DNA of 64,000 nucleotides from Octopus sinensis. Lineage: Eukaryota. The notes beneath the pieces are model-generated. The model was not told the DNA's origin, did not search any database, and saw nothing but the letters and a program-made list of their open reading frames with translations. The stretch's first letter is position 1, and every line of letters begins with the position of its first letter. This document shows positions 6,650 through 62,544 of the stretch, one piece after another. The position numbers were made by a program, and so were the translations under genes. The stretch is from assembly GCF_006345805.1 (NCBI RefSeq), contig NC_043012.1, forward strand, positions 13,640,001-13,704,000, given 5' to 3'.

Positions 6650-7185
6650 TTTCTACTCTAGGCACAAGGCTCGAACTTTTGGGGGATGGAGATAGTCAAT
6701 TAAATCGACCCGGTACGCAACTGGTAATTAATTTGACGACCCCGAAAGGATGACAGGCAAAGTCGACCTCGGCGGAATTTGAACACAGAATGTAAAGACA
6801 GGCGAAATACCTATTTCTTTATTACCCACAAAGGGCCAAACATAGAGGGGACAAACTAGGGCAGACATAGGTATTAAGTCGATTACATCGACCCCAGTGC
6901 GTAACTGGTACTTAATTTATCGACCCCGAAAGGATGACAGGCAAAGTCGACCTCGGCGGAATTTGAACACAGAACGTAAAGACAGACGAAATACCTATTT
7001 CTTTACTACCCACAAGAGGCTAAACACAGAGAGGACAAACAAGGACAGACAAACGGATTAAGTCGATTATATTGACCCCAGTCCGATTATACCGACCCCG
7101 AAAGGATGAAAGGCAAAGTCGACGTCGGCGGAATTCGAACACAGAACATAAAGACAGACGAAATACCGCTAAGCATTTCGCCCGT
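6650..7185 (-). mobile_element. SINE family B, head-to-tail trimer
   Basis: Three copies of the GTCGACTTTGCCTG/TTCATCCTTTCGGGGTCG core, joined by AAAGAAATAG|GTATTTCG junctions. Confidence 0.85.
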
Positions 7186-10525: not shown

Positions 10526-11719
10526 CTATTCTATACACAAGAAAGAAGTAAATAATATTGAAGTTATTACTGTTACTACAATGCTAATTTTCAGGAATGC
10601 CTCATCAAGTCGAAAATATTCGGTTATACCACATTTTCTTTTCGTCTTTGATTTTGAGTTCAAAGTTACGGGATCGATCTCTCTCGTGGAAATTGTTGAA
10701 ATATCCGCAATTTTGTTGCTTCGAGATTTGTATGTCGTTTGATCTGGGACATTCGATGTCTTTTCATCAGATGACTGAATGACATACAACTTGCATATAA
10801 TCACCGACCCGAGTGTTGCGATTCCACTTAAGAATGATAATAGCATCAAGTATGTCATAAGAAGTGAAGGGAATTTGGAATTCTTCGGTGTAGTTTTCTC
10901 GATTTCAACAAGATACAAGACGTTTGATAAAAATATTGTCGTAGCTAGAGAAACTTTTTCCCCTGATTCCGGAGGTAGAACGAAGACAAATATAGTCAAA
11001 ATAGTCATCATTATTGTTGGAATCAGCATAGCTACAATAGCTATTGTGAGTTTACGTCGTAAATGCAAATCAGCAACTGCAAAGCTGAATCTGTGGTCGG
11101 TAGCATTTTTCATACCATTGTAGTCGATGTCCCACTTATAGTTTTGGGAATAATTTAAATCCTTATATGTAAGTGACATTATTCTGGTATGGACAGGCTC
11201 ATGCAAAGCAACGCAAATGAATATTTCGCACTCATGCTGGTCAAACGGATAGGCGAAAGCATTGAAAGAGCAGTAGGTTTTCAGCAGTTTTAGTGACCGC
11301 ATTGTGACACGTCCATTATTAGAAACTTTTACTTCCTGAAAGATGCCTTTCTCTTCTGATTCCTTCATTGAATTGCACATTGCGATTTCTGGTGTCCACA
11401 GCTTATCTTTTTCTAGGTACATAACTGTAATGTTGTTGTAATCCAATGGATTCCAAGTCAGAAATTCGTCAGTCCATTCTAGACCAAAGTCGTACCGAGC
11501 TATAACTATGTTATTTACAAAGTCCAAACCATAGAATGTGTGAAGAAATAAAACAGCTTCTATATTGATAGTTGTAGATGAATCAATAACAGGCCTCACA
11601 CTTTTGCTATAATTAGATAATAAAGTCGCTTGTAATAATGTTTCATCATTGTACATGGGGCTCGAAATTACTATAGATATAACCGGTATCAGAATCAGAA
11701 AATATTTGTTTGACATCAT
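10526..11719 (-). CDS. Chemotactile receptor (CR), atypical Cys-loop ligand-gated ion channel subunit, single exon, 397 aa (here CR-A)
   Basis: Intact ORF with signal peptide, WTPEIAMCN loop A, Cys-loop C-SFNAFAYPFDQHE-C (13-residue spacing), M1-PESGEK-M2 (VSLATTIFLSN), M3, short intracellular loop and M4. No loop-C vicinal Cys and no introns. Confidence 0.95.
   Translation of the reverse strand: MMSNKYFLILIPVISIVISSPMYNDETLLQATLLSNYSKSVRPVIDSSTTINIEAVLFLHTFYGLDFVNNIVIARYDFGLEWTDEFLTWNPLDYNNITVMYLEKDKLWTPEIAMCNSMKESEEKGIFQEVKVSNNGRVTMRSLKLLKTYCSFNAFAYPFDQHECEIFICVALHEPVHTRIMSLTYKDLNYSQNYKWDIDYNGMKNATDHRFSFAVADLHLRRKLTIAIVAMLIPTIMMTILTIFVFVLPPESGEKVSLATTIFLSNVLYLVEIEKTTPKNSKFPSLLMTYLMLLSFLSGIATLGSVIICKLYVIQSSDEKTSNVPDQTTYKSRSNKIADISTISTREIDPVTLNSKSKTKRKCGITEYFRLDEAFLKISIVVTVITSILFTSFLCIE

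Positions 11720-13094: not shown

Positions 13095-13095
<1 letters not shown>
12880..13095 (+). mobile_element. SINE family A, 3' half
   Basis: Body and GGCGGTGCTTCAGCATGGCCGCAGTCAAATGACTGAAAC end with (AGTAAAG)n tail. Confidence 0.85.
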
Positions 13096-13140
<45 letters not shown>

Positions 13141-13186
13141 CTCTTTACTCTTTACTCTTACAAGTAAAAGAGTAAAGAGTAAAGAG

Positions 13187-13217
<31 letters not shown>

Positions 13218-13224
13218 ATATATA

Positions 13225-13257
<33 letters not shown>

Positions 13258-13297
13258 CTCATTTCTACCCTCAGTATTTTAATACATACATAGTTAC

Positions 13298-13347
<50 letters not shown>

Positions 13348-13401
13348 GTTTATCTATATGATATATATATATATATTAGATGTATTATATATATATTATA
13401 C

Positions 13402-13670
<269 letters not shown>

Positions 13671-27189: not shown

Positions 27190-28450
27190 GAAATTTTGTT
27201 CTCCTACGCTCCGTGCTGTCTCCCCTACGTTCATCGTTGTCTTGTTTCTGCAACGTCCCTCAGTACATCTTATACCATCGACTACATTCCTAGCTTTACA
27301 GTTTGTTCGTAGGATAGATCTACATACAATATACTTCGTATCAGTACAGGGGATTCTCTTAAATGGGTAGGTTCCAGCGATTAGTGATCTGATAGAGTTA
27401 CCTGTTCTTTCTACAGCCTTAATTCTTAGCTTAGTCTTTCTAGGACCCTTCTAAAGCGGTACGCCAGTTCGCCTCTAGGGGTGGTGTCGATGAACATGGC
27501 ACTCTGGTATATCTGACTGTCATACCATGAGTTGGCCTTCCCTATTTTCTTCTTAGTCTTTTCAATGGTATTCCACGACTTGCTCCTATAAAATGGGCAA
27601 ATCCAATTCTTATCGTTACGTATGATAGTTTCAAATTTCCTCATGAATCTATGGCTGTATCCTGAGAACTGCATGCGATGAACGAAGTGTTGTGTGTCTC
27701 TTTAACTCTGTAAGACCGAAAATACAGGACACATTTCTCATTACCCTGATGAGGTATGCCATCAATTTATTGTATTTGTCATTGTCTGCGATAGCTGAGT
27801 TCCGGTGGATTAGGTATTTGGAGGCCATAGGTTTCACATAGTGCGAATGGAGGATTTGGTTTTTATCATTCACCGTTTCCAGCCAGAGTTCTGTATCATG
27901 TACAGTAGTCTATGGTTAGGGTGATTCGTAGGGTAGTCTATCGTGACCTTAATACTGTGGTGGATAGAGTTAACTATTTGCTGGATGCTCTCCATAGTAT
28001 TAGTTTATGTTTCTATTTCAAGAGTTCTGTGTTAAGAGGGTGCCTTTACCACTATGTAGATAACATCAACATAGCGAGAGTACATGTTCATGAGTATGGA
28101 GTTCTGTGTCAGGCGTTCTTTAAGCGTTCAGTCCCATCATCACCGACGATGCTTATCCCTATCGCTGCCCCCTCATCCTGGGCGTATATTTTGTTGTTAA
28201 ACTTAAATGTGTGGCCTTTTAGGGTAACTCTTATAGTAGCTACTAGTGCTTGTGTGATCATTTTCTTTACTTGATATTGGTTTTCGGGGATCCATATGAC
28301 TCTGAACTATCCGAGCCATCTTTCTATATATGGGTCCTCCTAGCAATAGATGTAATTGTAGGAGGTCTAGAAGAGGAAGTTCAGAGTCGAGATGTAAATG
28401 TTGCCTTGTAGCAAGTTTGTTGAAAGGTGGATGAATGTTGGAAGAATGGC
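27190..28450 (-). mobile_element. Penelope-like element remnant (RT plus GIY-YIG endonuclease)
   Basis: HTFKFNNKIYAQDEG.AIG, MYSRYVDV (degraded YVDD), HYVKPMASKYLIH, MQFSGY, CKARNVV and VGETARSVGE, in that order. Confidence 0.8.
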
Positions 28451-29154
28451 CAGTGTGAAAGGACCAATTCTGAGCGTGCACCAGTAAACCTAAAGTCCAC
28501 CCCCTCCTCAAAGCGTTAGGGTGGTGTAAACGGGCAGTGTCAGAGCTATGCCGTCGGGATCTTCGGTTCCTGGTAGGGCGACCCAAGGCGGATTGGTCTG
28601 GCACCGAGCGGTATTAAGGCCGCAGTCTGGCCAACAGGGCTCTGGTGAAAATTCCAAGAGGCATATGGTCGGCAACCGGCGGCTTGGAGGTCGTTCTATC
28701 CCTGCGTCTGTGGAGACTCCGTGGCAAACAGGGCGTGCAGTCACTCAGGATATGCATGCAGGATGTCGGGGACCGCTTGTGAATTCAATATTCCCACGAA
28801 ACTTCTATGAATCCTACTTCAGGACCAGAGAATAAGCTGGCTCAACCCGCCCTGGGTGAATGCCGTCACAAGTACAAGTAAAAGTAAGTTCACCTGTAAA
28901 CAAAATGAGAAGGGCTCTTGCCTTGTTGTTCAGGCACCAGTGGCTTCTGTGGGGTTTTCCACGAGCTCCTTAAAACGCCTCCCCTATCGGGGGCCTAAAA
29001 TTGTTTAATTTTTTAATTGTTAATTATATTGTTTAAAGGTTATTAACCCATTGTGTCGTCCTGTTTTGTTGTTTATGATGTTGTTTGTTTTGTAATGTAA
29101 TTTTATGTGAGGCCTTGCAGCTAATTAAAGAACTTGTAATTCTTCTTCTTCTTC

Positions 29155-29208
<54 letters not shown>

Positions 29209-29239
29209 TATTATTATTATTATTATCATTATTATTTTC

Positions 29240-31380
29240 TTAATCACAGGCTTTGCTGGAGCTCCTGGAGTCTTGCATTCGTAGCGGGCTTACTACCTGC
29301 ATCCTACGATACCATGCTATCCTTTCTGTTCAGCTATCTAATGCTATCTTATACTTCTCTGATTATTCTATCTGTGCCAAGGAAGCAAAACTTCTGTAAC
29401 CGTTCTACTGAGCACTCTATTCCAATTTCTTTTATATTCCTTTTGTTGTCTTCTAATACTGTTCCCAAGGAACCAACAGTAATTGGCACTATCTTCACAT
29501 TCTTCGTCTTCCATAACCAGGCTATTTCGTACTTAAGAGGGTTGTATCTATCTGTCTTTTTGCCTTACTACTTGACTACTCGTGGGTCAAAGGGACATGA
29601 AATGTCAACTATATGGCATATGTTAGGCACCTTCTCCACCACCACTATATCCGGTCTGTTATGGTTGAGTACCTGATCTGTTTGGATCGGGAAATTCCAG
29701 AGGATTTTGCTAGTCTCCGATTCTTCCACTCTCTACGGTCTGCCCTCATACTGCGTCTTGCCTCTCTCTAGACCCCACTATTCGCATTGTCCTCATCGTA
29801 GAACTTCCGCTACATGGTCGTGTCGTGACAACTTGTAGTGGTTTATGGTAAGTCTAGGGCATTCGTTTGTGTGGTTTCATCCACTCTATTCTAGATGCGG
29901 CACATCAGAGACACTTGCTCATTCCTCAGTTCGTAGCCAGAGGTTGGTCTTGCACTGGCAGTATATTGTTCTGAGGCTTTTTTAGAGCTTCTTTTGTCAG
30001 CCAATCCCACCTATTTTTTCCAGCAAATTATTTTGCGGCTACATGGAAGTGAATGGTTAGACCCTTCTCGCGTAATTCTTCTTCATGTTCTTTTTGTACC
30101 TCTTCTTTTGTTTTCCTATTTTCTCTGCTCTCAATACTCTCAAGTAAAGTTTCCTTACTTTTCGATACGCACACAGCCTTCCGCACCTATCAGACCCCTT
30201 CCTCCATTTGCTTTCTTCATGTATAGGTAACCAGTGCCTGCTCGTGGACGATTGGATCTATGCATCGATAGGAGCTTTCTTAACTTCCGTCCATCTCTTT
30301 TAGCTCCTCCTCTGACAATTTCAGGATTCCATCGCCACATCGAATTACTCTCTCTGCGCTCGAATTTATTGCTGAAATTATGTTTCTAGTATTCAGCTTT
30401 GAAGCCTCGATTTTTCTCATTCGTCGCAGGCAATCTCTTTTTGTCTTTTATTTCATGTCGAGGTGTTTGATTCCATCTGCCTCAACAATTCCCAGATTTT
30501 TTATAACCGGATTGAAGTTCAATTGCCTTCATTATTTCACCACTCGGCAACCAAATGCTTTCTGCTCTGGCAAGCTTTCCTCCCATCATCACTATCATAG
30601 CACATTTTGAGATTCCAAATTCCATCTTATTATCATTGGAGAAAATCTGCACAGACTGGACTAGACTATCGAGTTATGTATCAGTTTTTCTGAATAGTTT
30701 CATGTCGTCTATGTATAGCAAGTGGTTTAGTTTTCCATTACCACTTTTCAGATCATACCCCAACTTTACTTTCTGTAGTATTTCATTCAAGAGGATTATT
30801 CCCAGCACGGATATCAGTGAGGACACAATGTCCCCTTGGAAGATTACTCTCTTGATTTTCACCGCCCTTATTTCTGCCCCTTTTTTCCATGCACTTCTCA
30901 ACATTTTTACTCACTGTACCCATGGCTCCAACTTTTGCAGCGACCACAACTGCTCAACCTTCCAAGCTAACCTGTTATATTTCTCGACTTTTCTTGATTT
31001 ATCTTGCTATATCTTTTCATGCAATATCTATGATACAACATCGTTTACTTTATTTCACATTCGCTCTATTCTCTATATCCCGGTCGCACTGAATCATAAA
31101 ATCCTATACAATCTTTGCATTAACATTTTCGATGATGCATTCGGGTTTATGTTCGTACCAGTTTTTTCCTCTGTCAAGTCCATATTTGTTGCAAAGTGCC
31201 CATTGGACAATCCTTGCTACATTGTCATGACGTCTCTTATATTCTTTCTGGGCTAGTTGCGTACCTTGACTGGAAATATGCCATACGATTTCACCATTTT
31301 GTCCACAAAGTCTGCATTAATCACCTTTTGATGTGTTGTCTATTCTGTATTTGATGTAATTCCTTCTTAGCACTTGCTCT
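29240..31380 (-). mobile_element. R4/Dong-clade non-LTR retrotransposon, 5'-truncated (RT, CCHC, restriction-like endonuclease)
   Basis: IKRVIFQGD..LNHLLYIDDMKLF, RHDHVA, KILWNFPIQTD..HNRPDITVV..IVDISCPFD, GSLGTV..LQKFCFLGT. (TAA)n tail at ~29140-29235. Confidence 0.85.
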
Positions 31381-32190
31381 TGGGCAGCACAAATTAGAGC
31401 ATCCGTTTCCGGTTTTAAATCACTTTTTGTCATGCAAAGATATCTTTTTTGTTTGTGTGTCTTAACTTCAACATCCCTATGAAATTGACCATGCATTCTT
31501 CTCTATATCCATTTATTTACAGTTTCATTCATTCTCCAATGCTTGTACATTGCTTCATATTTGCAATCTTCCATCTTGCACAAGCCTGAATTTCTTACTT
31601 CGAATAATGGGGGTTCTGTGACATTTTTTACATACCATGCTATGTTGTTTTTTCCTGCTCTAATGCGGTGTTCGCCTCCAATTAGTCCTCTTCTCGTTCG
31701 TGTTTGTTTTCTTGGTACATACCGTCTGTCTCTGTCACTTTCTGGGTGGAGTATCCCATATCTAGTCAGCAACGTTCTTGTCTTTCTGTCTAAGCTGTTT
31801 AGTTCGTCTACTCTCCATGCTATTAATACTGCTCCATATCTAAGGAATGAAATCGCCCAGAAGTTGAGAGCTTCAATATTATATCATCCGTTTAATTTCG
31901 ACTTAAGGATCATCCTCAGTCTGTGCAAGTACTCCAGCATATATTTTTCTGTCATTTCTTTCTCCATCAATCTATCAATTTCAAGTATCCCCAAGTACTT
32001 ATAGTCCGTCCGTCTATTCTAACTGCTTCATAACACACCCCGACGGTATCGCTAGCCCGTCCATACATTTGATTTTGCCTTTCTTCAAGACTAACACACC
32101 ACACTTTTTCAGTCCGAACTCCATTCTGATACCAGCGCTGAATGTACACACCGTATCAACGAGGGAACTGGTTTTGGATTCTTATTTGTC
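31380..32190 (-). mobile_element. Second R4/Dong-like fragment (post-RT region)
   Basis: LTRYGILHPESDRDRRYVPRKQTRTRRGLIGGEHRIRAGKNNIAWYVK, paralogous to the adjacent copy. Confidence 0.75.
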
Positions 32191-37377: not shown

Positions 37378-38580
37378 TTAGTCTTGTTGAGTAAACAGTA
37401 GACATGTAAATATTAATGAAACTATTACCGATATCACGATGCTAATTCTTAGAAATATATCATCCCATCGATTGTAGTCGGATATGCCAAGCCATTTTTT
37501 TCTTGGCCTTTCTTCTGGATTCAAAGTATTCGATTGTGCCGAGGCAATTATTGAAACATCGGCAATTTGGTTAGCATGGGGTCTCTTTCTATTTTCATTC
37601 GGTGAATTTGATTTCACTTCATCAGAAGTTTGTATTACATACAATTTGCTTATAATTACCGAACCAATTGCAGTGAATCCACTCATCATCGATAATAGCA
37701 TTAAATATAACATAAGAAGGCAAGGATATTTTGAATTTTTTGGTGTTGTCTTCTCCATCTGAACAAGATACAACACGTTTGATAAAAATGTTGTCATGGC
37801 TAGAAAAACTTTCTTTCCAGATTCAGGAGGTAGAAGGAAAACGAAAATAGTTAAAACGGTCATTATTACAGACGGAATCAGCATAGCTATGACTTCTATG
37901 GTAAGTTTACGTCGTAGATACATCGGTGCAAATGCGTAGCTAAATTCATCGTTCGAGGCATTTACCGTACCATGAAGCGTGATATCCCACTCATAGTTTT
38001 CTAGCCAATTTAGATCATAGTAATGGAGAGATTTTATTCTCGTGTGCTGCGTGCTATGCAAAGCAACACACATGTAAATTTCGCACATATGCTTATCAAA
38101 TGGGTAAGTATATGCGTTGACTTGACAATATGTATTAAGTAATTTAAAAGAATACATAACCACATGTCCATTACTAAAAATCCATATTTCAAGGAAGTCA
38201 TCTGTTTCTTCTGAGTTACCCATTGAATTGCATAATACAATAGGTGGTTTCCAAACATTTTCTTTTCCTAGATGAATATTTGTAATGTTATTATAATCCG
38301 AGGGGTCCCACTGTAAATTTTCATCAGTCCATTGTAGTCCAATGTAGTACTGAGCCGTCAGTAAGTTATTCACTAAGTCCAAATCATTGAATGTGTGAAG
38401 CATTATGGTAGCATATATATCGACCGGTGTTGCCAAATCAATAACCGGTCTTATATATTTGTTATAATTGGATAGTAATTTGATGTGTAGTAGTCTTTCA
38501 TCATTATCCGTAGGGTTAGAATTTGCTATCAATATATTTGGAGTCAGTACCAACATACGATATAGTATTAACAAAAACAT
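37378..38580 (-). CDS. Chemotactile receptor, single exon, 400 aa, with non-canonical M2 pore (here CR-B)
   Basis: Intact ORF paralogous to the other two. Cys-loop C-QVNAYTYPFDKHM-C. M1-M2 linker reads PESGKKVFLAMTTFLSN instead of PESGEKVSLATTIFLSN. Confidence 0.93.
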   Translation of the reverse strand: MFLLILYRMLVLTPNILIANSNPTDNDERLLHIKLLSNYNKYIRPVIDLATPVDIYATIMLHTFNDLDLVNNLLTAQYYIGLQWTDENLQWDPSDYNNITNIHLGKENVWKPPIVLCNSMGNSEETDDFLEIWIFSNGHVVMYSFKLLNTYCQVNAYTYPFDKHMCEIYMCVALHSTQHTRIKSLHYYDLNWLENYEWDITLHGTVNASNDEFSYAFAPMYLRRKLTIEVIAMLIPSVIMTVLTIFVFLLPPESGKKVFLAMTTFLSNVLYLVQMEKTTPKNSKYPCLLMLYLMLLSMMSGFTAIGSVIISKLYVIQTSDEVKSNSPNENRKRPHANQIADVSIIASAQSNTLNPEERPRKKWLGISDYNRWDDIFLRISIVISVIVSLIFTCLLFTQQD

Positions 38581-40433: not shown

Positions 40434-40813
40434 GTGTGTGTGTGTGTGTGGTGTGTGTGTGTGTGTGTATGTGAGTTAGAGGTTCAGCAACAATCTAAGA
40501 GATAATAAATATCTAATATATGTCCATAGTAGAAAAAGCTGTTAGAGTTTAGTATTTATTCTTATTCATTTATTTGTTTTTATTTATCTTTTCATCTACT
40601 TTTTTATTTACTTATTTCATTTCCTTAGTTTGCTCACTTATGCATATGATTGTAATCAATTAATTATCAGATATAAATGAATGTTTAGAGGCTGATGTTT
40701 CTCCATTGATCATCCTCTACATTTTCTTATTTCCAATATATATATATAAGAAGATGAAATTTGATATTAACATATATACTTACGTATCTATATATCTATA
40801 TATTCTTATATAA

Positions 40814-40823
<10 letters not shown>
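39961..40823. repeat. Tandem duplication, period 513 bp, with an apparently identical ~350-bp unique core (39961-40310 and 40474-40823)
   Basis: AGTTAGAGGTTCAGCAACAATC...ACATACATGT appears twice, separated by (TA)n(TG)n tracts. Confidence 0.9.
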
Positions 40824-40856
<33 letters not shown>

Positions 40857-40866
40857 TATATTTATA

Positions 40867-40982
<116 letters not shown>

Positions 40983-40992
40983 TATATCTATA

Positions 40993-41155
40993 TAGGCGCA
41001 GGAATGGCCTGGTGGTAAGTAGCTTACTTCCCAAACACATATTTTCGGGTTCAGTCTCATTGCGTGGCACCTTGGCCAAGTGTCTTCTACTATAGTATTG
41101 TGAGTGGATTTGGTAAACGGAAACTGAAAAAAGCACGCCATATATATATGTGTAA

Positions 41156-41649: not shown

Positions 41650-41711
<62 letters not shown>

Positions 41712-41712
<1 letters not shown>

Positions 41713-43675
41713 CTTTGATAGGTTTCGGCCATTATTGGCCCAGGCATGTCTAACTTAATAGCACCACCTGGTGAAGTCTTTCAAGTCAGAATTTGGGCAC
41801 TATGGCCCACTCAAGTAGAGAGTTATTGTTTACAGAGACATATCCGGGTGTAGGGGGTTTATCCGGGATTTCTTGAAGGAATCTGTCCAAAGACTTCTTG
41901 AACCCTATAGGGTCAGTTTCTGTTTTAATGTGTTTTGGTGTAATGTTAAAGAGAGCGGGGCCAATTGAGGTGAAATAATTGTGCCGTATTGTTGTTATGA
42001 GATGAGAGTGCGATTTTTGTTTTGGGCGGATGGCACGGGGCCCAAGCCTTGGATGTACCTTAAAGGTGATGCCAACATCATTTGGGCAATGCTGATGGAA
42101 TATTTTCCACATCATGCAGATGATGTAGCGCTCACGACGACGTTGGAGAGAATAGAGTTTTAGCTTTTCTAGTCGACCCCAATAGTCGAGGCCTGTCATG
42201 CCATCTATCTTTTTTGTGATTGCCCTTTGAGGTGCTTCAACTTTTATGATACCTTGTATTGTGTGGGGAGACCACAGTGGACAACAGTATTCAAGGTGGG
42301 GTCGGGCAAAAGTGGAGAAGAGAAGGATAATGGTGTGGATATCTCTCGACTGGAAAGTTCTGAGAATCCAGGAACACATTCTGCGGGCCATGTCAACTTT
42401 GGTGTTCATATGAGTGGCCCAGCTTACGTTGTTGTCCACAATTACTCCCAAGTCTCTGATGTTGTTGGACGCCGCGAGAGTTTCACCTGAAGGAAGGGAG
42501 TATGGGAGTTTCAGGGCATCCTCTTTTCCAAAGTGGATTAGCTCAAATTTATCCTCGTTCAGCAGCATATTGTTTTTTTCTGCCCATTGGATAACAGCCA
42601 GTAGATCTGACTGAAGGCATGTCCGGTCACTCGCCTCATTTATGACCTTCTGTAGCTTGGAGTCATCTGCAAAGATTTTTATGTTGCTGTGCTGATGATG
42701 TCATTAATGTCATTAATGTAAATGATGAAAAGAAGTGGGCCCAGCACAGTGCCTTGCGGAACGCCACTACTGACTTTGGCTGGGCTTGATTTTACCCCTT
42801 CAACTACAACATGTTGAGATCTGTCTGTCAGGAAACACTTAATCCATTTCAGTAACTTTCCAGAGACACCAATGTTGGATAGTTTTTTCAATAGGATCTT
42901 GTGATCGACCCTGTCGAAGGCCTTACTGAAATCAAGGTAGATGACATCGGTGTTGGAGCCCTCTCCGAAAGCTCTCAAAATGTCCTCAAAGTGATGCAGG
43001 AGCTGCGTTAGGCAGTCCCTTCCATTACGGAACCCATGTTAGTTGGAGATCAGCCGTCTGTTGCTTTCCAGAAATTGGGTTATTCGAGATCTCACCACCC
43101 TCTCAAATACCTTGATGATATGAGAGGTGAGTGAGATCGGACGGTAATTCACTGCAAGGGACTTGTTTCCCTTTTTGAAAACTGGGACAACAGACTGGGA
43201 CAGAAGGTTTTTTGGAATATAGCCAGCATCCAGTGAGTTTCTCCACAGATTAGCAAGGGGAGATGCAAGTTGGTGTCGACACACCTTCAGGACACAAGCA
43301 GGGAACCTATCGGAGCCTACTGCTGAATTGTGTTTTATTTCGTTTATCGCCGCTAAGACATCAGGGGCACTAAACGTTATGTCCGATATAGTGTGTGGGG
43401 GTTGACATCACTGATACAGCCCAGATCGGCCATATCAGGATTGCTGAAAACAGAGCAGTATTGTTTCTGCAGTATCTCGGCCATGGATTTGGCATTATCT
43501 TGGAGAGTGCCAGTTTCGTCAATTAGAGGGCCTACAGTGGAGACAGTGACCCTGCGTTTCCTCGCAAATGAAAAGAACACTTTGGGGTTGAGTTTGATTT
43601 TTTCAATGGCCCACTTCTCCTCAGCTGATCTTTGGTTATTGATGAGGGTCTTCATGCATTGTTGGAGGTTATATT
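41712..43675 (-). mobile_element. CR1-clade LINE, 5'-truncated, relatively young (RT ORF with a few frameshifts)
   Basis: NYRPISLTSHIIKVFE, VIYLDFSKAFDRVDH, GVPQGTVLGPLLFIIYIND and HLEYCCPLWSPH. 3' stem-loop GGCCA-ATAA-TGGCC. Confidence 0.92.
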
Positions 43676-44061
43676 TTTTGGATATATATATATACGTGTG
43701 TGTGTGTATGTATAATAATAATATGAGGGAATATTATTCCAAACTTACAGGGAAAAATTCACTTTAGAAATACTAAATCAAATTTCACAAAATATTATAT
43801 ATATATAATATATATATATATATATAATATATATATAAATTAGAAAAAGTATATGTATATATGGTTTCAGGTGAACTTTCGTTTCTATTTTTTCACATAT
43901 ATCTTCCAATGAACATATATCAATGCTAAAGTAGAAGAGAAAAAATGCAAGTAATAAATAATGTTTGATCTTACACGTCCCAAATTTCTCTTCCTTTCTG
44001 CGAAGCGCATTCAAATTCACAGCGATTTTCGCAAAATGTCTGTAATTTCACATTCAGATTT

Positions 44062-45294
44062 TTATTCCCGTGGAATAAACAACAAACATGTAAATATTAT
44101 TGAGGTTATGACAGATGTAACAATGCTTAGTTTTAGAAATACGTCATCGAGCCGTACGTAGTCGGATATGCAAAATATTCGTTTCCAATGGGGCTTCTCT
44201 CTGATCAGTGAATCTGATTGTGCCTCGGAAATTGTTGAAATATCTGCAACTTTGTTAGTATGAGATTTATTCAAATTTTGATCTGACGTGTTCGATTTTC
44301 TGAAGGAAGATGACTGATCTACGTACAACTTACTTATAACCACAGAACCAAGTGTAGCGATTCCGCTTAACATTGACAATAGCATTAAATATAACATTAG
44401 CAGTGAAGGATATTTTGTATTGGTCGGAGTAGTTTTATCGATCTGGACAAGGTACAAGACGTTCGATAAAAATATTGTAGTCGCTAGTGAAACTTTTTCC
44501 CCTGATTCAGGAGGCAGAAGGAAAACGAAAATAGTTAAAATAGTCATCATTACTGTTGGAATAAGCATAGCAATAATTCCTACAGTAAGTTTTCGTCGTA
44601 AGTACATCGGTGCAAAAGCGTAACTGAACATGTCGTCCATACCATTCACTTTACCAGTGAAATTGATAGCCCACTTATAGTTTAGTGTAAACTTTGAATC
44701 TCCGTATATGAGTTCCTTTATTCTGGTGTGGTTAATAGTATGCAAAGCGACACACATGTACATTTCGCACGTATGTTCATCAAATGGATAGGTGTAAGCG
44801 TTGACTTGACAATAAGTGTGCAGTAATCTGAATGACCAAAAGTTAGCCCAACCCCTATAAGTAATACTTATTTCACCTACACCATCGCTTTCTTCCGATT
44901 TGTCCATTGAATTGCACATTTTAATAGGTGGCGTCCATATCTTATCTTTGGGTAGATATATACTCGTAATGTTGTTATAGTCCGACGGGTTCCAAGTCAA
45001 CTTTTCATCGTTCCACATTAATCCAAAATAATAGCGTGCCCTTACAATGTTATTTACAAAGTCCAAATCATAAAGCGTTTGAAGGTACAGTAAAGCAGTT
45101 ATATCCACTGCATTGGTCAAATTAATAACTGGTCTTATACTTTTACTATAATTAGCTAACAAATTGTCTCGTAATAGCCTTTCATCGCCATACGTAGGGC
45201 TAGAATTTACTATCGGTACACTCGAAATCAGAATAAAAACAAGATATATCACAAATATCATTGTGTAGTTTACTTCTAAAAAGTGAAATTTCAT
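44062..45294 (-). CDS. CRT1: Chemotactile receptor CRT1 (CR518)-like, single exon; Met12 (45261) is the likely start, giving 399 aa
   Basis: Intact ORF. Long stretches (PTYGDERLL, YLPKDKIWTPPIKMCNSMDKSEE, VALHTINHTRIKELIY, the whole M1-M3) match my recollection of O. bimaculoides CRT1. The orthology is recalled and needs an alignment; the CR family call is supported directly by the motifs. Confidence 0.9.
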   Translation of the reverse strand: MKFHFLEVNYTMIFVIYLVFILISSVPIVNSSPTYGDERLLRDNLLANYSKSIRPVINLTNAVDITALLYLQTLYDLDFVNNIVRARYYFGLMWNDEKLTWNPSDYNNITSIYLPKDKIWTPPIKMCNSMDKSEESDGVGEISITYRGWANFWSFRLLHTYCQVNAYTYPFDEHTCEMYMCVALHTINHTRIKELIYGDSKFTLNYKWAINFTGKVNGMDDMFSYAFAPMYLRRKLTVGIIAMLIPTVMMTILTIFVFLLPPESGEKVSLATTIFLSNVLYLVQIDKTTPTNTKYPSLLMLYLMLLSMLSGIATLGSVVISKLYVDQSSSFRKSNTSDQNLNKSHTNKVADISTISEAQSDSLIREKPHWKRIFCISDYVRLDDVFLKLSIVTSVITSIIFTCLLFIPRE

Positions 45295-51379: not shown

Positions 51380-53320
51380 CTTCCATATCTCATTAAAGCA
51401 ACCACCCTTTTAGCTTCGATTGTAGCACATGCTGAGTTCTCAAATACTCTCTCCTGTGCATTTCTTTCATCTTGTGTTCATTCATACTATCGCTTTCATT
51501 TATCCCAGACATTTATATCCTTCCTCTCCGACTTCCTTTATAACTTCACCACTTTCCAGCTTCATCGCATGGCTTTTAGTGATTTTTACTCTTTTGAAAA
51601 TCATTATACCACATTTCTTGATCCCATATTCCATGCCAATATCTTTGCTAATCATCTGCTCAGTTGCGGTCAAATTCTCAATTTCTTTCTCAAACCTTAG
51701 AGAATAAATTTAGGTCATTCTTAAACCACAGGTTGTTTACTTTCACCCTGCCTAACATGTACCCCACACACATCTTTCTTAAAATGCTCGTTAGTGATGT
51801 ATGCAGATAACAAATAGGTGAGACGACAGACTATTCCCTTGAAAGATTCCTCTTTTGATATTTACCTTTCCCAACATAACCCCCTGTTCTTTGAGTTCAG
51901 GTCGTTACGTTGTCATTGTGTTTTGCATTAAGTTCAGGATATTAAGCAGTTTAAGGTACTCAATAAACCACGAGTGTGGGACAATGTCATAACCTTTTCT
52001 GTAGTCCACCCATTCCATCGACAAACTTTTGAGCCTCTTCTTGCAGCAAACCAAGATAGTTTTATCGATTATTAGTAGATACATCGTTCCTCCTCTCTTA
52101 CGTCTACACCCTTTTTGTTCCACTGGTAGCAGGTGGTTCTCATCTAGGTACTTATAGATGCTGTTTGATATGATGCCCGTCATCAGTTTCCACATCAGTT
52201 TTCCAAATACATTTCCTTTACTTGGGTCCTTCTGGCATAGTACCTTTCTTACTTTTGTCATACAGGCCAGTACTTAGATGCTATTACTCAGTATTTCGTC
52301 CATACGTCTCACCAAATCTCCCGTGAAGACCTGTCAGATTTTAAACCAAAAACCCTGAACCCCATCTGGATCAAGCGCTTTTCAGTTAGACATTTTCATC
52401 TCAGTTATTCTCAAATCCTCCGACTGATACTCTCCACTCTCCACTCTCCTCTTTGAGTGTCTTTAACCACTCTGCTTCAGTTTTGTGTTGTTTTTCCTGA
52501 GACCATATGTTTCACCAGAATCTTTTGCTTTCATCAGCATCCGGTATGGCATTTTCAACATTTTCCTTCCCATCCAATTCCTGATAGACTCTTTTTTGAT
52601 TTGGTTCGTAAAGTCTATTTAATCTGTGCTGCTCATTTCTCTGTTCAAATATCTTTAGTTTATATGCTTTTACTTTCAACCTCTGTTTTAATTTCTCAAA
52701 CACAATATTGATTTCCAGTCTAGCTCAACATTTTTCTCTCGCTGAACTGCATTTCTTTTTTTCTGGTTACGATAAAAAACTGCGTTATTCTCCTTTTCCG
52801 CCATAGCTCCTTCAGGTTATGTTGACATTTACCTTTGGCTTTCAAACCTAAATTCCGAGCTATAAAGATCGAGATTGCATTTATAAGATTATTAGTGTCT
52901 GTGATATTGTCAGTCCGCATTTCACCAGTGATATCATTTATCTTCCTGACTCATTCATTGAGTTTCTCTCTGTCTACGTTTATAAATCCCGTATTAAAGC
53001 GCTGTTCACCAGAAGTCCAAATATCAATGATTTCCTTTAAAATGGATATCTGTTCCTCGGTTCTCTCATCAATAATCTCAGACTTATGTTTGATTTATTC
53101 CTTTAATACGACTGCCATAGTTTCACTATCTGCATTCTATTCCGTTCACCGCTGGTCTTATTATCCGTCTCTTAATGCTTTCTAGTTCAACCTGAGATAA
53201 CAACTCATTCTTTATGGTGGGTCTAGCTTGCTCACACAGATTTTGTTCAGTTAATTCAAATAGGCTTCTGTCGTTCCAAGCCCTGAGCATTCTTTTCCGA
53301 TATACCCTACCAGGCAATTC
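51380..53320 (-). mobile_element. R4/Dong-like element, N-terminal to RT portion, degenerate
   Basis: GRVYRKRMLRAW..EQNLCEQAR, NQKRVYQEL, WKLMTGIIS..LLPVEQKGCRR..WVDYRKGYDIVPHSW, DIGMEYGIKKC. Confidence 0.8.
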
Positions 53321-53381
53321 ATTATTATTATAATTATTATTATTATTATTAGTAGTAGTAGTATTAGTAGTTGTTGTTGTT

Positions 53382-53459
<78 letters not shown>

Positions 53460-53464
53460 ATAAT

Positions 53465-55270
53465 ATTATCTCAGGTTTTGTTGGAAATCCTGGAGTCTTG
53501 CATGCGTAGATGGCTTACTACATGTAGCCTATTCTACCATGCTGATCGTTATTTTCAGTTTTCTAATACTTTCCTGATTATTCTGGTTGTGCCAAGGAGG
53601 CGAAATTTTTGTAACAGTTCTATTGGGTACTCTATTCCAATTTCCTTTATATGTGTGATGCCTGCTGATACTGTCCCCAAGGACAAAAGAATAATTGGCA
53701 TTATCTTCACCTTCATTTTTCCATTACTGTTTCTGAACTGATAGTCTGCCTTTGCCTTCCTTACTAATAAAATGATGGCGATCAAACATAAGACAAATAT
53801 CAAAGGAAACAACGAGTACGCCTGGAAAATTTTTCCTTTGATATTAACTTTCCCTAAGCGTGTCTCACTTGGGTAGAGATCTATTTTACATTTCTTCATG
53901 CTAAAGTTAATTAATTCTCTTATGTCTTGTGCTATATTGAATGTACCCAGGCACTCACTTATCCATGAGCATATGATCATGATATAGACTTCCCTTTATT
54001 CCATCCATGCTATTGTTAGATTTTTTCTTTCTAGCTCTTACTTCATTGGAAACTGCTTTGTCTGTTTATATTAGATCATGTGTTTCTCTATCCTTCTTCC
54101 TGCAACATTGGTATCTTCTGGTTCTTAAGGTGCTCGTAAATGCTTTCTGAAAGCATTCCTGTTAACAGTCTCCACACTAATGATAAGGAGCTGATTGGTC
54201 TATAGTAGCTAGCTGTTTTACAATTGCCCTTATCTTTCAGAAAGGGTATTGTCCCCAAAGTAATCCTGATTTTGTTCACTCAGACTCTCATGTAAAGTAC
54301 TAAATATCTTTAGTCAGTACCTTTGAACTAAATCTGGACGTAGACCCTTCCAATTCGGTATTTCTCCTAAAACCTTACTCATTAATGCACTAATTAGCCT
54401 TATTTTTGGCTGCTTCTCTCTCACTATTTCTTCCCTCAGTTTTTAAAGCCATACTGCATCTCCATTATAATTGACTGGCTTATCTCAAATATTTCTCCAG
54501 AACTTTTTAGTTTCTTCTACATTAGGTTTCTCATCTTCAGTACTTCACTCTCCACTATTTATTTATTTATAAAATCTCCTCTGTTGAGTCTCAGATAATC
54601 TATTCTCTTGATACTGATTTCAGGAACGCCTGCCTGCTATTACTATGATACGCTGTTTCAACTCTTTTATTACTCTCCCAAACCTTTCTCTTCGACTAAA
54701 TATCTTGTCTCCAAATCTTTTGTTCAGACCATTTGCTCTTTCAATCATTCCGTGTGAGATATTTAATCTTCTAGTAATTACTGCCTCTCCTGCTCAGATC
54801 AATAAGTTGGTTTCTCCTATATTTTTAGTTTCTATGCTACTCATAAGAGAATCTACTTTCCAAGTCATTTCTAGCAGTTTCCTTATGTTGGTACCTTTTA
54901 ATGCAGGCAATCTTTTTTACTACTTCTTTACACATTACTTACTACAATTCATCTAAAATCTTATCTTCCTCACTTAAATCACTTAAATCGCTGTGACAGT
55001 TGTCACTTCCTTATTAGTAGCCTTTATATTATTTTCCCTTTAAGTATCTCTGAAGTTGGTGTTTGTCTTTCCTATTGCCTGGTCTTTCCGTTCTAGTTCT
55101 CTCGTGATCTCTGCCATCCAATTCTGCCATCGGCTTTCTTCTCTGAATAGCAACTACTAATCTATGCTCAGTCACTTTAAACATATACTACATCCGTTTC
55201 CTGTAGCCCCTTCTTTTGGGTTCACTTTCTAAGTAACATTGCATCGTTATCTTGCTTTCTTCGATGGCCC
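53465..55270 (-). mobile_element. R4/Dong-like element with a large internal deletion
   Basis: YYRPISSLSLVWRLLTG and VNIKGKIFQA..ADYQFRNS fused directly to KVKIMPIILLSLGTV..LLQKFRLLGTTRIIRKVLE. Microsatellite tail. Confidence 0.8.
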
Positions 55271-56044
55271 ACTTCATCCTCCTTATTCTATTATCCGCTG
55301 ATGTTTTATTATGATAACGGCTGTGGTCACTCTGCATCTTCACTGAGCCACTGCCTTAAAGTTCCAGCTTCATTATCACTGTTACACCAGAGTTTCATCG
55401 GAAACTCCTGTTTCTCATAAACTGAGCTACGGTAACGGTCGTCATCAACGCCATCACCACATATATTTTTTGGCACCTGACAGTTTCAAGCAACTTTCTA
55501 TTGCATCATTTGTTGCACCTGTATGCTGGGGGTGGATATCGTTTTGTTTTGAGGTTTGGGCTGAGTCTTCTGTTGTATTAGTTTTTGTATTGTGTGTTGT
55601 TTATGCAGTGCAGCTTGTGTTCTTCTGTTGGGTATCGGACTTATGTGGCACACGTTGTGGGCTTTGTTCATATGAGTTTATTCCTGTATATTTTAGGAGT
55701 GATACATAGTAGGGTGTGTAAATCATAGATCAACTATTTCAAAGTATTAATGGTTATCTGTCCACCGTGGTTTTTCTGTTGGTTGCTTTTGTTATGGTTT
55801 CGTTGTTACAGAGTTCTGCTGTTTTCCGGAATTTAGCGCGCCAGAGCTGAGACATTAAAAAGAACTCCAATGTAATCGGTAGAACTGCACATACGTCTAA
55901 TTTTGTGAGGACAACCTGTGTATAGTTCTGCATATTATATTGAATTAGAACGGTCGTAGTGAAGGGCCACGGATGTTGTTACGTAAGTAAAATCGTTAAT
56001 GGCGAAACTAGTCTACGATTAATACGATTAATATATATATATAT

Positions 56045-59329: not shown

Positions 59330-60456
59330 TTATTTCAATTAATAAAAAGTAAAAAAAAAAGAATTATATATTGCTAATCCGGTTCAAGTGGATATGTAAA
59401 CGCGAATTTTTAGAAATATCACATCAAGTTGAACGCAATTAAAAATGTCCTTACTCCATTTTCTTTCTTGAACAGTTTTCGACCTTACTTACCTTTTCGG
59501 ATCGGGATGTGAAAGGTATTGAAATATTCGTAGTTTTCTAAATTTGATAATATTTTTATATGATGGATTCGATTTTTCTGCATCAGATGTTTGATTTAGA
59601 TACAACCTACTGACAAGTACTGAATCAAATGTGCTCATTCCACTCAGCAGTGATACTAATAATATATAGTACGTAAAATGTGAAAGATATTTTGAATTTT
59701 TTGGTGTATTCTTACCGATTTGCACAACGTACACGACATTTGATAAAAAAAAATATCGTGGTATCCAGAGGAAGTTTTTCACCTGATTTAGGTGGCAGAA
59801 GGAGAAAAAATAGATAAAACAGTCAACATTACAGTCTCAATTATCATAGCTACTATACCAAAATTGAATAAGTAAATCGAAGCATATGCGTAACTGAGAG
59901 AGAATTTCAGACCCTTCATTTCTCCACGGATCTGAACATCCCATTCATAGTTTTGTATATTGTTTAAATCATTATGTTTAAATGCTTTTTTCTTGAATGG
60001 ATTGGCTTCAGCAAAGCCGTACACATGGATAAAAGTAAGCATTGACTTCACAAAATGTAAGTAATAATTTCTAAGACCACATTTCCACAGATCCATTACT
60101 ATAAAGAATTAGTTCGCGTAAACACTCTTTCTCTTCTGAACCCTTCAATGCATTACAAATTGCTAAATTTGGTATCCAAAGCTGATCTTTTGACACATTA
60201 AACACTGGTAATTATATAGAGCAATCATTTCCATGTTAGATTTTCGTCGACCCATCGTTGCTCTAAAATGTAGCGATCCTTAAGTACGTTATTTCAAAAA
60301 TCCAATTCATGAAGTCTCTCAAACTGTAAGACAACATATATCTCAACAGCTGTAATTAGATTAATGACATGTCATATATATGACATATATAGCGCTGTAA
60401 CGTAATGTCGATAGAATCTGAGTAAAAATGGAACCAGAATATTATATCAGTATCAT
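59330..60456 (-). pseudogene. Degenerate chemotactile receptor pseudogene (CR-psi)
   Basis: Stitched frames give VINLITAVEIY..LHELDF*NN..RWVDENLTW, KDQLWIPNLAICNALKGSEEK, CEVNAYFYP, QNYEWDV, LPPKSGEK, LSNVVYVVQIGKNTPKNSKY and VQLDVIFLKI, collinear with the intact CRs. Several stops, frameshifts and deletions. Confidence 0.9.
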
Positions 60457-61861: not shown

Positions 61862-62300
61862 TATGGCTGCCCCATCGTTATCGAGTATGGCCATTGCACG
61901 AAGCTTAACTGTTACTGGTGCTGTGATCGAATGTGACTTTTTAGTCCGGCTAAAGATCTACAATGTCTTGTAAAGAATTGGCAACTAAAGCCTTTACTGG
62001 TTATTGCCGGCTGTAGGTGTAACTGGGCTTCATGTACCTTTGCATGTCGTTTAAGTCCTCCTGCCGAATTACACTCTCTTCTACACGCCCGAATGATATG
62101 ATTAGTATGGTGTGTTGCACCACCACCAGTGGCCAGGTTGTCACTCATCTGTCTCACTTTATTACTACGAAGATGACTCTTGAGTCCAGCTTTACTGAAG
62201 CAGGGTCTTGCACAGACACTGCATGTCAGGTCACTTTCGAGTGCTACTGGTAACATGTAACCCAGTACAACCTGTTGCATGGTCGGGTCGTCGGCGACGA
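61862..62300 (-). mobile_element. Probable LINE 3' end (RTE-like) encoding three C2H2-type zinc fingers
   Basis: CSVCARPCFSKAGLKSHLRS, ACRRECNSAGGLKRHAKVH and CQFFTRHCRSLAGLKSHIRSQH, then a short 3' UTR (GGCCATACTCGATAACGATGGGCAGCC) ending at (TA)n. Confidence 0.6.
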
Positions 62301-62544
62301 AACCGGCAAATAAGCGTAATGGAAAACGGAGATAAACGCACAAGATGTTATTTAAATGATTTATGGTGATATAAATAACATCTTGTGCGTTTGTCGCCAT
62401 TTTCCATTACTCTTATATTCTCCAAAATACATCTCACTTTTCGGAATTATTGCCCATGTAAATGTCGTTACTAATTTCTCTGGCACTTAAGCGACATTTG
62501 GCTACTTTGGTAAGTTTTTCTCTGGATATTTCCTTGTTAATGAT

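Follow-up and report, generated by a model that had tools for sequence, protein, structure and literature searches.

A stretch of 64,000 nucleotides of the Octopus sinensis genome (assembly GCF_006345805.1, contig NC_043012.1, positions 13,640,001 to 13,704,000; hereafter the window) contains three intact single-exon genes for chemotactile receptors (CRs), a family resembling nicotinic acetylcholine receptors (nAChRs), all on the minus strand. One of them, CR-B, encodes a subunit whose pore entrance carries a lysine where every other CR has the glutamate of the intermediate ring, and a phenylalanine where other CRs have serine or threonine at the constriction. As judged from the coding sequences, three octopod species retain this altered pore under purifying selection, and CR-B is probably a working subunit that alters the ionic signal rather than a dying gene. 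We tentatively propose that CR-B acts as a pore-modifying subunit in heteromers, where it would reduce cation conductance and Ca2+ entry.

CR-B is a Cys-loop subunit of the octopus chemotactile receptor family

CR-B is a bona fide Cys-loop subunit of the octopus CR family. Its ORF (open reading frame), which a first-pass annotation of the window had called otherwise intact, is uninterrupted (intronless) over 400 amino acids and lies inside a tandem CR cluster; CRs have been described as intronless (PMC13174522). The protein matched the Pfam profiles of the ligand-binding domain (Neur_chan_LBD, PF02931; 114.5 bits, cut-off 26) and of the membrane domain (Neur_chan_memb, PF02932; 36.7 bits, cut-off 28.1). 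The Cys-loop is present as Cys-x13-Cys (C152-QVNAYTYPFDKHM-C166), both cysteines being invariant across the CR alignment. The canonical vicinal cysteine pair of loop C (YxCC) is lacking, with no Cys-Cys dipeptide in all 400 residues.

An AlphaFold2 (AF2) monomer model of moderate confidence (predicted local distance difference test, pLDDT, 70.7) displayed four transmembrane helices (residues 228-249, 255-278, 288-324 and 367-397; M1 to M4). Its best Foldseek match was chain 8eis_A of CRT1 (chemotactile receptor for terpenes 1) from O. bimaculoides, with a TMt of 0.89 and a root-mean-square deviation of 2.7 Å. At the sequence level, CR-B matched CRT1 (PDB 9e6b/8eis; 59-60% identity) with E=5e-152, as against about 1e-31 for nAChRs. 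In a neighbour-joining tree, the CR-B clade (100% bootstrap) was sister to the CRT1 clade (78%) within the octopus CR radiation. In both the O. sinensis and the O. bimaculoides genome CR-B is annotated merely as a generic acetylcholine-receptor subunit. It probably belongs to the 26 counted octopus CRs; a 2025 preprint names CRT1 and CR840 as the sole members of this set with cloning and characterisation behind them.

Three published ligand contacts of CRT1 are altered in CR-B, i.e., Y39 to Met/Ile, S169 to Leu and L191 to Glu/Lys, and the ligand range of CR-B therefore probably differs from that of CRT1. No transcript assembly with the CR-B ORF was found in the searched collections, which is uninformative because the demonstrably expressed CRT1 is equally absent from them.

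The pore entrance of CR-B is altered at two key positions

Pore residues were numbered from the conserved lysine preceding M2 (0'), so that -1' denotes the intermediate ring (PMC5447003); the equivalents of -1', 0' and 2' in muscle alpha1 are E241, K242 and T244 (PMC2217203). The pore entry of CR-B reads ...LLPPESG-K256-K257-V-F259-LAMTTFLSNVLYLVQMEK..., with Lys256 at -1' and Phe259 at 2' (Table 1). The first-pass annotation had pointed out this G-K-K reading together with its AAG and TTT codons, and both codons and coordinates turned out to be exact. It had further set CR-B against the G-E-K of CR-A, of the neighbouring CRT1-type gene and of a CR pseudogene, and all three indeed read G-E-K in the aligned sequences. 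A glutamate early in M1, which it had also noted, is E229; AF2 places the start of M1 at residue 228. All 23 other octopus CRs have a small residue at this position (Gly in 17, Ala in 4, Ser in 2), and the aligned residue of squid CRB1 is Gln. The altered M3 that had been described corresponds to C287, F302, A304 and I305.

The remaining pore-lining positions of CR-B (T6', L9', L13', V16' and K20') are as in other CRs, and derived residues at non-pore positions of M2 occur at 5' (Met/Ile vs. Thr) and 7' (Thr vs. Ile). CR-B retains Glu at -4' and 19' and Lys at 20'. In addition, the vestibule position that corresponds to CRT1 E104 has stayed acidic in the CR-B group (E/D125; E, D and D in the three orthologues); in CRT1, the E104 vestibule ring has been reported to promote Ca2+ permeation. 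The M1-M2 linker PPESGKK aligns without gaps to PPESGEK, has no proline insertion at -2', and is followed by the conserved K257 and L266 (9'). Thus, CR-B shares linker length, 0' Lys and 9' Leu with the cationic Gly-Glu-Lys (GEK) filter, but lacks its -1' Glu and its small polar 2' residue. In place of the anionic Pro-Ala-Arg (PAR) filter (-2' Pro, -1' Ala, 0' Arg and 13' Thr) it has G-K-K and Leu270 at 13'. The CR-B pore would accordingly be classified neither as cationic by the GEK definition nor as anionic by the PAR definition.

Lysine at -1' and phenylalanine at 2' are rare and derived

Two sets of sequences were used for comparison: the 23 other octopus CRs together with three distant outgroups (P0032, P0033 and P0036), and 216 M1-M3 domains from 177 proteins, comprising the CRs and the 150 best representatives from a library of 1.84 billion proteins. 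The 23 other CRs and the three outgroups have Glu at -1' without exception. Among the 216 related domains this position is Glu in 200 and Lys in five; four of these five belong to the CR-B orthologue group (three genes, with O. bimaculoides present as two gene models), and the fifth is a garbled gene model from Pinctada (pearl oyster). The 2' residue is Ser in 21 and Thr in two of the other CRs; in the larger set, Ser, Gly or Thr account for 186 of the 216 domains and Phe for six, four of them again from the CR-B group. The distant outgroups read ESGE(K/R)VSLATT, and Lys at -1' and Phe at 2' are therefore derived in CR-B.

Signature positions were required to be fixed in the CR-B group, to have a residue that occurs in none of the 23 other CRs, and to be conserved to at least 85% among these. 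Five positions of the whole protein were obtained in this way, L69, K256, F259, C287 and A304. Of the six pore-lining positions that are conserved, two are in this set (hypergeometric p=0.018, conserved columns).

Two distant nAChR-like proteins are also unusual in this region: P0148, from a European Nucleotide Archive (ENA) contig, has the filter GERLFFAMNV with Phe at 2' and 3', and P0054, from MetaClust, has DTKQKVTF with Lys at -2' and Gln at -1'. The cytoplasmic constriction hence varies naturally beyond CR-B as well, though rarely.

The altered pore is conserved in three octopod species

An orthologue in O. bimaculoides (XP_052829363.1; L002:10001-11203) is intact, 400 amino acids long and 87% identical to CR-B. 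It is the gene directly downstream of CRT1 and is followed after about 29 kb by the CR-A orthologue, its flanks being collinear with the window, and the gene order CRT1, CR-B, CR-A, all in the same orientation, is found in both species. A third octopod orthologue (L001:776-1978, true start at L001:776), likewise intact and 400 amino acids long, shares 71-72% identity. It was recovered from Logan assemblies belonging to the SRR118693xx series of runs, where three contigs from three separate runs encode the identical product. This species is more distant (dS 0.27-0.38, as against 0.11-0.16 for the O. sinensis-O. bimaculoides pair).

All three orthologues have GKKVFLA(M/I)TTFL together with E229 and C287. 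The AAG codon at -1' and the TTT codon at 2' are identical in the three species, whereas adjacent codons differ synonymously. Both orthologues thus carry the altered codons and no disabling mutations, a comparison that the first-pass annotation had proposed. Faulty assembly of the O. sinensis reference, the other caveat of that annotation, or faulty sequencing is therefore excluded with near certainty by the same codons in three independent assemblies, namely the reference itself, the O. bimaculoides chromosome assembly and the Logan runs.

A profile search with the three CR-B proteins yielded no additional CR-B orthologues. There was also no entry for an O. vulgaris CR-B protein in the searched collection, which reflects annotation rather than gene loss because a CRT1-like entry is missing there too. 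The model of the O. vulgaris CR-A orthologue (P0017) is missing the N-terminus and ends in a divergent tail (…VTRLHSVGYATYLHGRRTFI) in place of M4, which may be due to a frameshift or an annotation problem. Within the CR-B group, O. sinensis CR-B alone lost two cysteines just before M4 (residues 364-372; 37465-37489, minus strand), the segment being KWLGISDYNRWDD where O. bimaculoides has KWFCISDYTRCDD and the third octopod KWFCISDYNRCDR. The first of these cysteines is conserved in most CRs.

CR-B evolves under purifying selection

Pairwise omega (dN/dS) values were calculated by the Nei-Gojobori method (NG86) for the three species pairs and evaluated by one-sided Fisher tests. For the whole gene, CR-B displayed values of 0.62, 0.39 and 0.46 (p=0.044, 4.5e-9 and 2.7e-6), compared with 0.41, 0.33 and 0.38 for CRT1 and 0.64, 0.37 and 0.30 for CR-A. 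Values for M1-M3 were 0.21-0.42 in CR-B, 0-0.03 in CRT1 and 0.08-0.21 in CR-A, and those for M2 plus linker were 0.06-0.19, 0 and 0-0.09, respectively. M2 plus linker was thereby the most constrained part of CR-B. Omega of the extracellular domain was 0.31-0.38 in the longer comparisons and 0.90 between O. sinensis and O. bimaculoides.

A maximum-likelihood (ML) codon branch model, run in our own GY94/F3x4 implementation and not in PAML, agreed with the NG86 counts. It gave an omega of 0.51 for the CR-B clade (omega=1 rejected, p=1.2e-5), marginally above the background of 0.36 (p=0.04), and of 0.36 for the CR-B transmembrane domain (omega=1 rejected, p=5e-4); omega=1 was also rejected for the extracellular domain (p=1e-3). 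The ratio that the first-pass annotation had suggested computing is thus significantly below 1 for the whole gene as well as for the transmembrane domain.

These values bear on early pseudogenization, the alternative raised in the same annotation, according to which relaxed selection would have fixed pore-disabling mutations in a gene whose ORF is intact by coincidence. The faster evolution of M1-M3 than in CRT1, a transmembrane omega above background, the extracellular omega of 0.90 and the presence of a true CR pseudogene in the same window speak for such a decay. However, the ORFs are intact in three species. In the CR-B ORF about 5.1% of single-base changes would create a stop, and the synonymous tree length is about 0.40; about 25 stops would be expected over the three species under neutrality and none was seen (P ~2e-11). 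Neutrality was rejected for the gene and for both of its domains, the Lys and Phe codons are the same in all three species, and the whole-gene omega of 0.39-0.62 is comparable to that of the functional CRT1 (0.33-0.41). Decay of CR-B is hence highly improbable. The gene rather appears to have gone through a phase of rapid change in its channel domain once duplicated, and to have been kept thereafter by purifying selection that, though genuine, is less strict than that on the paralogues.

Gene cluster and other features of the window

The features of the window and the residues of CR-B discussed here are listed in Table 1. The CRT1-like gene matched O. bimaculoides CRT1 (PDB 9E6B/8EIS) with E=1.7e-233 (to 9e6b) and 87% identity. 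The name CRT1 used for it in the first-pass annotation needs a correction, since by this match the gene is the O. sinensis orthologue of the published receptor and not CRT1 itself. The CR pseudogene has at least three frameshifts, is 30-43% identical to the CRT1-like gene across most segments, and has the filter region LLPPKSGEKLPLDTTIFF.

Table 1. Positions of CR genes and of CR-B residues in the window
Feature	Position	Strand	Description
CR-A	10526-11719	-	397 aa, third intact CR; GEK/Ser2' pore; outgroup and control
CR-B	37378-38580	-	Single-exon ORF, 400 aa plus stop; nAChR-like Cys-loop chemotactile-receptor subunit
M3 segment of CR-B	37669-37722	-	CR-B-specific fixed residues C287, F302, A304, I305; others have Ser/Pro at 287, Thr at 304
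Rest of M2 of CR-B, residues 257-277 (0' to 20')	37750-37812	-	AF2 helix 255-278
Phe259 of CR-B, M2 2'	37804-37806	-	Codon TTT; Ser/Thr in other CRs
Lys256 of CR-B, M2 -1' (intermediate ring)	37813-37815	-	Codon AAG; Glu in every other CR
Glu229 of CR-B, first turn of M1	37894-37896	-	Codon GAA; E in 3/3 CR-B orthologues
Leu69 of CR-B, extracellular domain (LDLVNN)	38374-38376	-	Phe in other CRs; fifth clade-specific position
CRT1-like gene	44062-45294	-	410 aa; upstream tandem neighbour and sister paralogue of CR-B; GEK/Ser2' pore
CR pseudogene	~59348-60419	-	Spread over all three minus-strand frames; G-E-K retained

Between the CRT1-like gene and CR-B, a segment of about 2 kb (41700-43850) is absent from O. 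bimaculoides, where the interval is otherwise collinear, and is probably a lineage-specific transposable-element insertion. An ORF of 260 amino acids within it (41786-42568, minus strand) resembles by eye the C-terminal part of a retroelement reverse transcriptase and gave no match in Pfam. Another ORF of 162 amino acids (61912-62400, minus strand) has C2H2 zinc-finger matches (Pfam zf-met, and Zn_SUZ12 over a short stretch) and could represent either part of a gene or an ORF derived from a transposable element. The base composition is strongly skewed at 28000-32000 and 52000-56000 (AT skew to -0.27, GC skew to -0.26), and the skewed regions contain long low-complexity ORFs on the plus strand (30555-31256 and 31543-32004). 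TA, TG and TAT microsatellites are abundant across the whole window (e.g., 13095-13514 and 40785-40994), and a tandem repeat with a unit of 184 bp is present in 2.6 copies with 86% matches at 6694-7167.

Discussion

Pores of the nAChR type are narrowest between -2' and 2', and this stretch serves as their selectivity filter (PMC2217203). The local pore potential there is about -230 mV, originates nearly entirely from the -1' Glu ring, and changes by +57 mV with every negative charge that is lost; conductance is approximately linear with ring charge, a ring of -2 yielding about 20% of that of a ring of -4 (PMC2217203). The premise of the first-pass annotation, that the -1' Glu ring governs cation selectivity and that 2' lies at the narrowest part of the pore, agrees with this work. 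A heteromer with a single beta E252K subunit still passed current, and a fully neutral ring gave less than 50 nA (PMC2217203). In alpha7, the E237A substitution abolished Ca2+ permeability (PMC5447003). A modulatory, a non-conducting or an altered-selectivity role of CR-B would each be consistent with this mutagenesis literature and with reports of heteromers.

Of these possibilities, CR-B as a pore modifier of heteromers is favoured because both homo- and heteropentamers of CRs have been reported (PMC11526382; 2025 preprint). The unchanged state of the other pore-lining residues, the -4' Glu, the 19' and 20' positions and the vestibule acid also fits a subunit working within a cation-conducting complex. 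Lys at -1' and Phe at 2' would have been gained after the duplication that separated CRT1 from CR-B and before the three octopod lineages diverged, and kept since. We infer that CR-B joins GEK-type CR subunits in heteropentamers, in which every CR-B copy would shift the intermediate-ring charge by +2, e.g., from -5 to -3, and would place a bulky hydrophobic side chain into the constriction. Unitary cation conductance and especially Ca2+ permeation would be expected to drop, and rectification or desensitisation might change. CR-B complexes could in this way provide a distinct ionic signal for ligands of the diverged CR-B pocket. A homopentamer of CR-B would have a ring of +5 together with five Phe residues, and poor or no cation conduction would be expected for it.

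Several observations weigh against this proposal. Purifying selection is borderline for the O. sinensis-O. bimaculoides pair taken alone (omega 0.62, bootstrap confidence interval 0.40-1.02). The constraint on the transmembrane domain is about twofold looser than in the CRT1 and CR-A lineages (0.36 vs. 0.17, p=0.027), and M1-M3 evolved about threefold faster on the CR-B than on the CRT1 lineage (Tajima relative-rate test, 14-15 vs. 4-5 unique changes, p=0.01-0.03), both of which could reflect a partial loss of pore function. The CR-B stem branch displayed no gene-wide positive selection (omega 0.28), with dS to the paralogues being saturated at about 1. Partial deprotonation of the Lys ring, or an orientation of it away from the pore, may make the effect smaller than predicted. 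Finally, the literature searched yielded no report on transcription, co-expression or assembly of CR-B or on its electrophysiology. Neither CR-B nor a GKK/Phe-2' pore is mentioned in this literature, a mention in the supplements of the three primary CR papers being possible.

The looser constraint on the transmembrane domain would also suit a CR-B that does not conduct at all and acts as a dominant-negative silencer, as a ligand-binding decoy, or as a partner in assembly or trafficking. Cations should be blocked by a Lys ring of +5 combined with a ring of Phe where the pore is narrowest, and a constrained extracellular domain (omega 0.31-0.38 in the longer comparisons) next to a relatively relaxed transmembrane domain is the pattern expected if binding and assembly outweighed conduction. 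However, M2 plus linker is the most constrained part of CR-B, and the intact state of the other pore-lining residues, including the 9' Leu gate, is unexpected for a dispensable pore. Moreover, muscle acetylcholine receptors with a single E-to-K subunit still conduct (PMC2217203). We consider a purely non-conducting role unlikely.

About equally unlikely is that the substitutions have only a mild effect, with the Lys deprotonated, salt-bridged or off the pore and the Phe oriented tangentially, so that CR-B would be an ordinary cation-permeable CR specialised in its ligand pocket. The adjacent 0' Lys ring of nAChRs does not face the pore and barely affects conduction (PMC2217203), the CRT1 contact positions Y39, S169 and L191 differ in CR-B, and CRs have been reported to diversify chiefly in the binding pocket (PMC11526382). 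In contrast to 0', the -1' side chain of cation-type pentameric ligand-gated ion channels (pLGICs) faces the pore and dominates the local potential (PMC2217203), and its invariance as Glu in the other CRs and the outgroups argues against the position varying freely without consequence.

Another possible consequence would be a shift of homomeric or CR-B-rich channels towards non-selective or anion-permeable behaviour, which would make CR-B an inhibitory or shunting chemoreceptor without a Pro-Ala-Arg filter. The -1' position is the main determinant of charge selectivity, and a neutral ring was necessary for the cation-to-anion switch of alpha7 (PMC2217203). In CR-B, which is under purifying selection, the net charge per subunit at the cytoplasmic mouth (-4', -1' and 0') changes from -1 to +1, and a 2026 preprint mentions, with no details, "mixed ion selectivity patterns" in TM2 of the CR clade (PMC13174522). 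Anion-selective molluscan or invertebrate nAChR-like channels with a PAR-type filter (van Nierop 2005, as cited in PMC13174522) show that nAChR-derived channels of molluscs switched their charge selectivity by a few M2 changes. However, these channels have Pro at -2', Ala at -1' and Arg at 0', whereas CR-B has G-K-K with the linker length of cationic CRs, no -2' Pro insertion, and Leu instead of Thr at 13'. CR-B keeps Glu at -4', which favours cations, as well as the acidic residue of the vestibule (E/D125), and five Phe residues at 2' would, on general grounds, probably occlude or dewet the constriction. In alpha7, ring neutralisation alone was insufficient for anion selectivity and strongly cut the current (PMC2217203). 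Altered selectivity of this kind is therefore doubtful, and slightly more so the specific idea that CR-B is a natural charge-reversed nAChR-type channel whose Lys ring at -1' renders homomeric or CR-B-containing complexes anion-permeable or non-selective.

The proposed role as a pore modifier has parallels in known systems. CRT1 shares with CR-B its family, fold and intronless structure; the two are adjacent tandem genes in two species, form sister clades, and have the Cys-loop, 9' Leu, -4' Glu, 20' Lys and the acidic vestibule residue in common. CRT1, which functions as a Ca2+-permeable homomer (2025 preprint), differs from CR-B by Glu at -1' and Ser at 2' and by its nearly frozen M1-M3 (omega 0-0.03 vs. 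0.21-0.42), CR-B having in addition E229 in M1 and C287 and A304 in M3. Engineered Glu-to-Lys or Glu-to-Gln mutants of muscle and alpha7 nAChRs concern the same position and the same chemistry as CR-B, including a single E-to-K in a heteropentamer. Intermediate-ring mutants of the nAChR are said to have been described by Imoto in 1988. A graded loss of cation conductance was reported for -1' mutants (Wilson et al., 2000; PMC2217203), and a -1' mutant of Bertrand 1993, as summarised in PMC5447003, had lost Ca2+ permeability. Such mutants are laboratory-made, whereas the change in CR-B is natural, fixed across species and accompanied by a bulky side chain at 2'.

Natural pore-tuning subunits, such as muscle gamma and epsilon or neuronal beta2 and beta4, illustrate how composition sets ring charge, as we propose for CR-B. 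The 5-HT3B as compared to the 5-HT3A subunit is another case of composition-dependent conductance and Ca2+ permeation. Muscle gamma and epsilon have Gln at -1', with ring charge setting conductance (PMC2217203); beta2 and beta4 have Lys at 20', a 'Ca2+ limiter', and the subunit mix sets the fractional Ca2+ current (PMC5447003). None of these cited vertebrate pore-tuning subunits has a positive -1' or an aromatic 2' residue, and CR-B thus departs further from the norm than they do.

The CRs of octopuses are a family of sensory receptors that was described recently, with "specific ionic signals" ascribed to different CR complexes. CR-B, which adjoins the best-studied CR, CRT1, represents a conserved and selected natural experiment at the two residues on which conductance, Ca2+ entry and charge selectivity of nAChR-type pores depend, and a natural counterpart to 35 years of intermediate-ring mutagenesis. 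As a CR subunit that may tune the pore or act as an inhibitor, it is a concrete candidate. If CR-B merely lowers conductance in heteromers, it would be a neat, incremental addition to the family. If selectivity were inverted, CR-B would reveal a second, previously unseen evolutionary route to anion permeation in pLGICs, and chemotactile cells would gain an ionotropic inhibitory or shunting input beside the excitatory CRT1.

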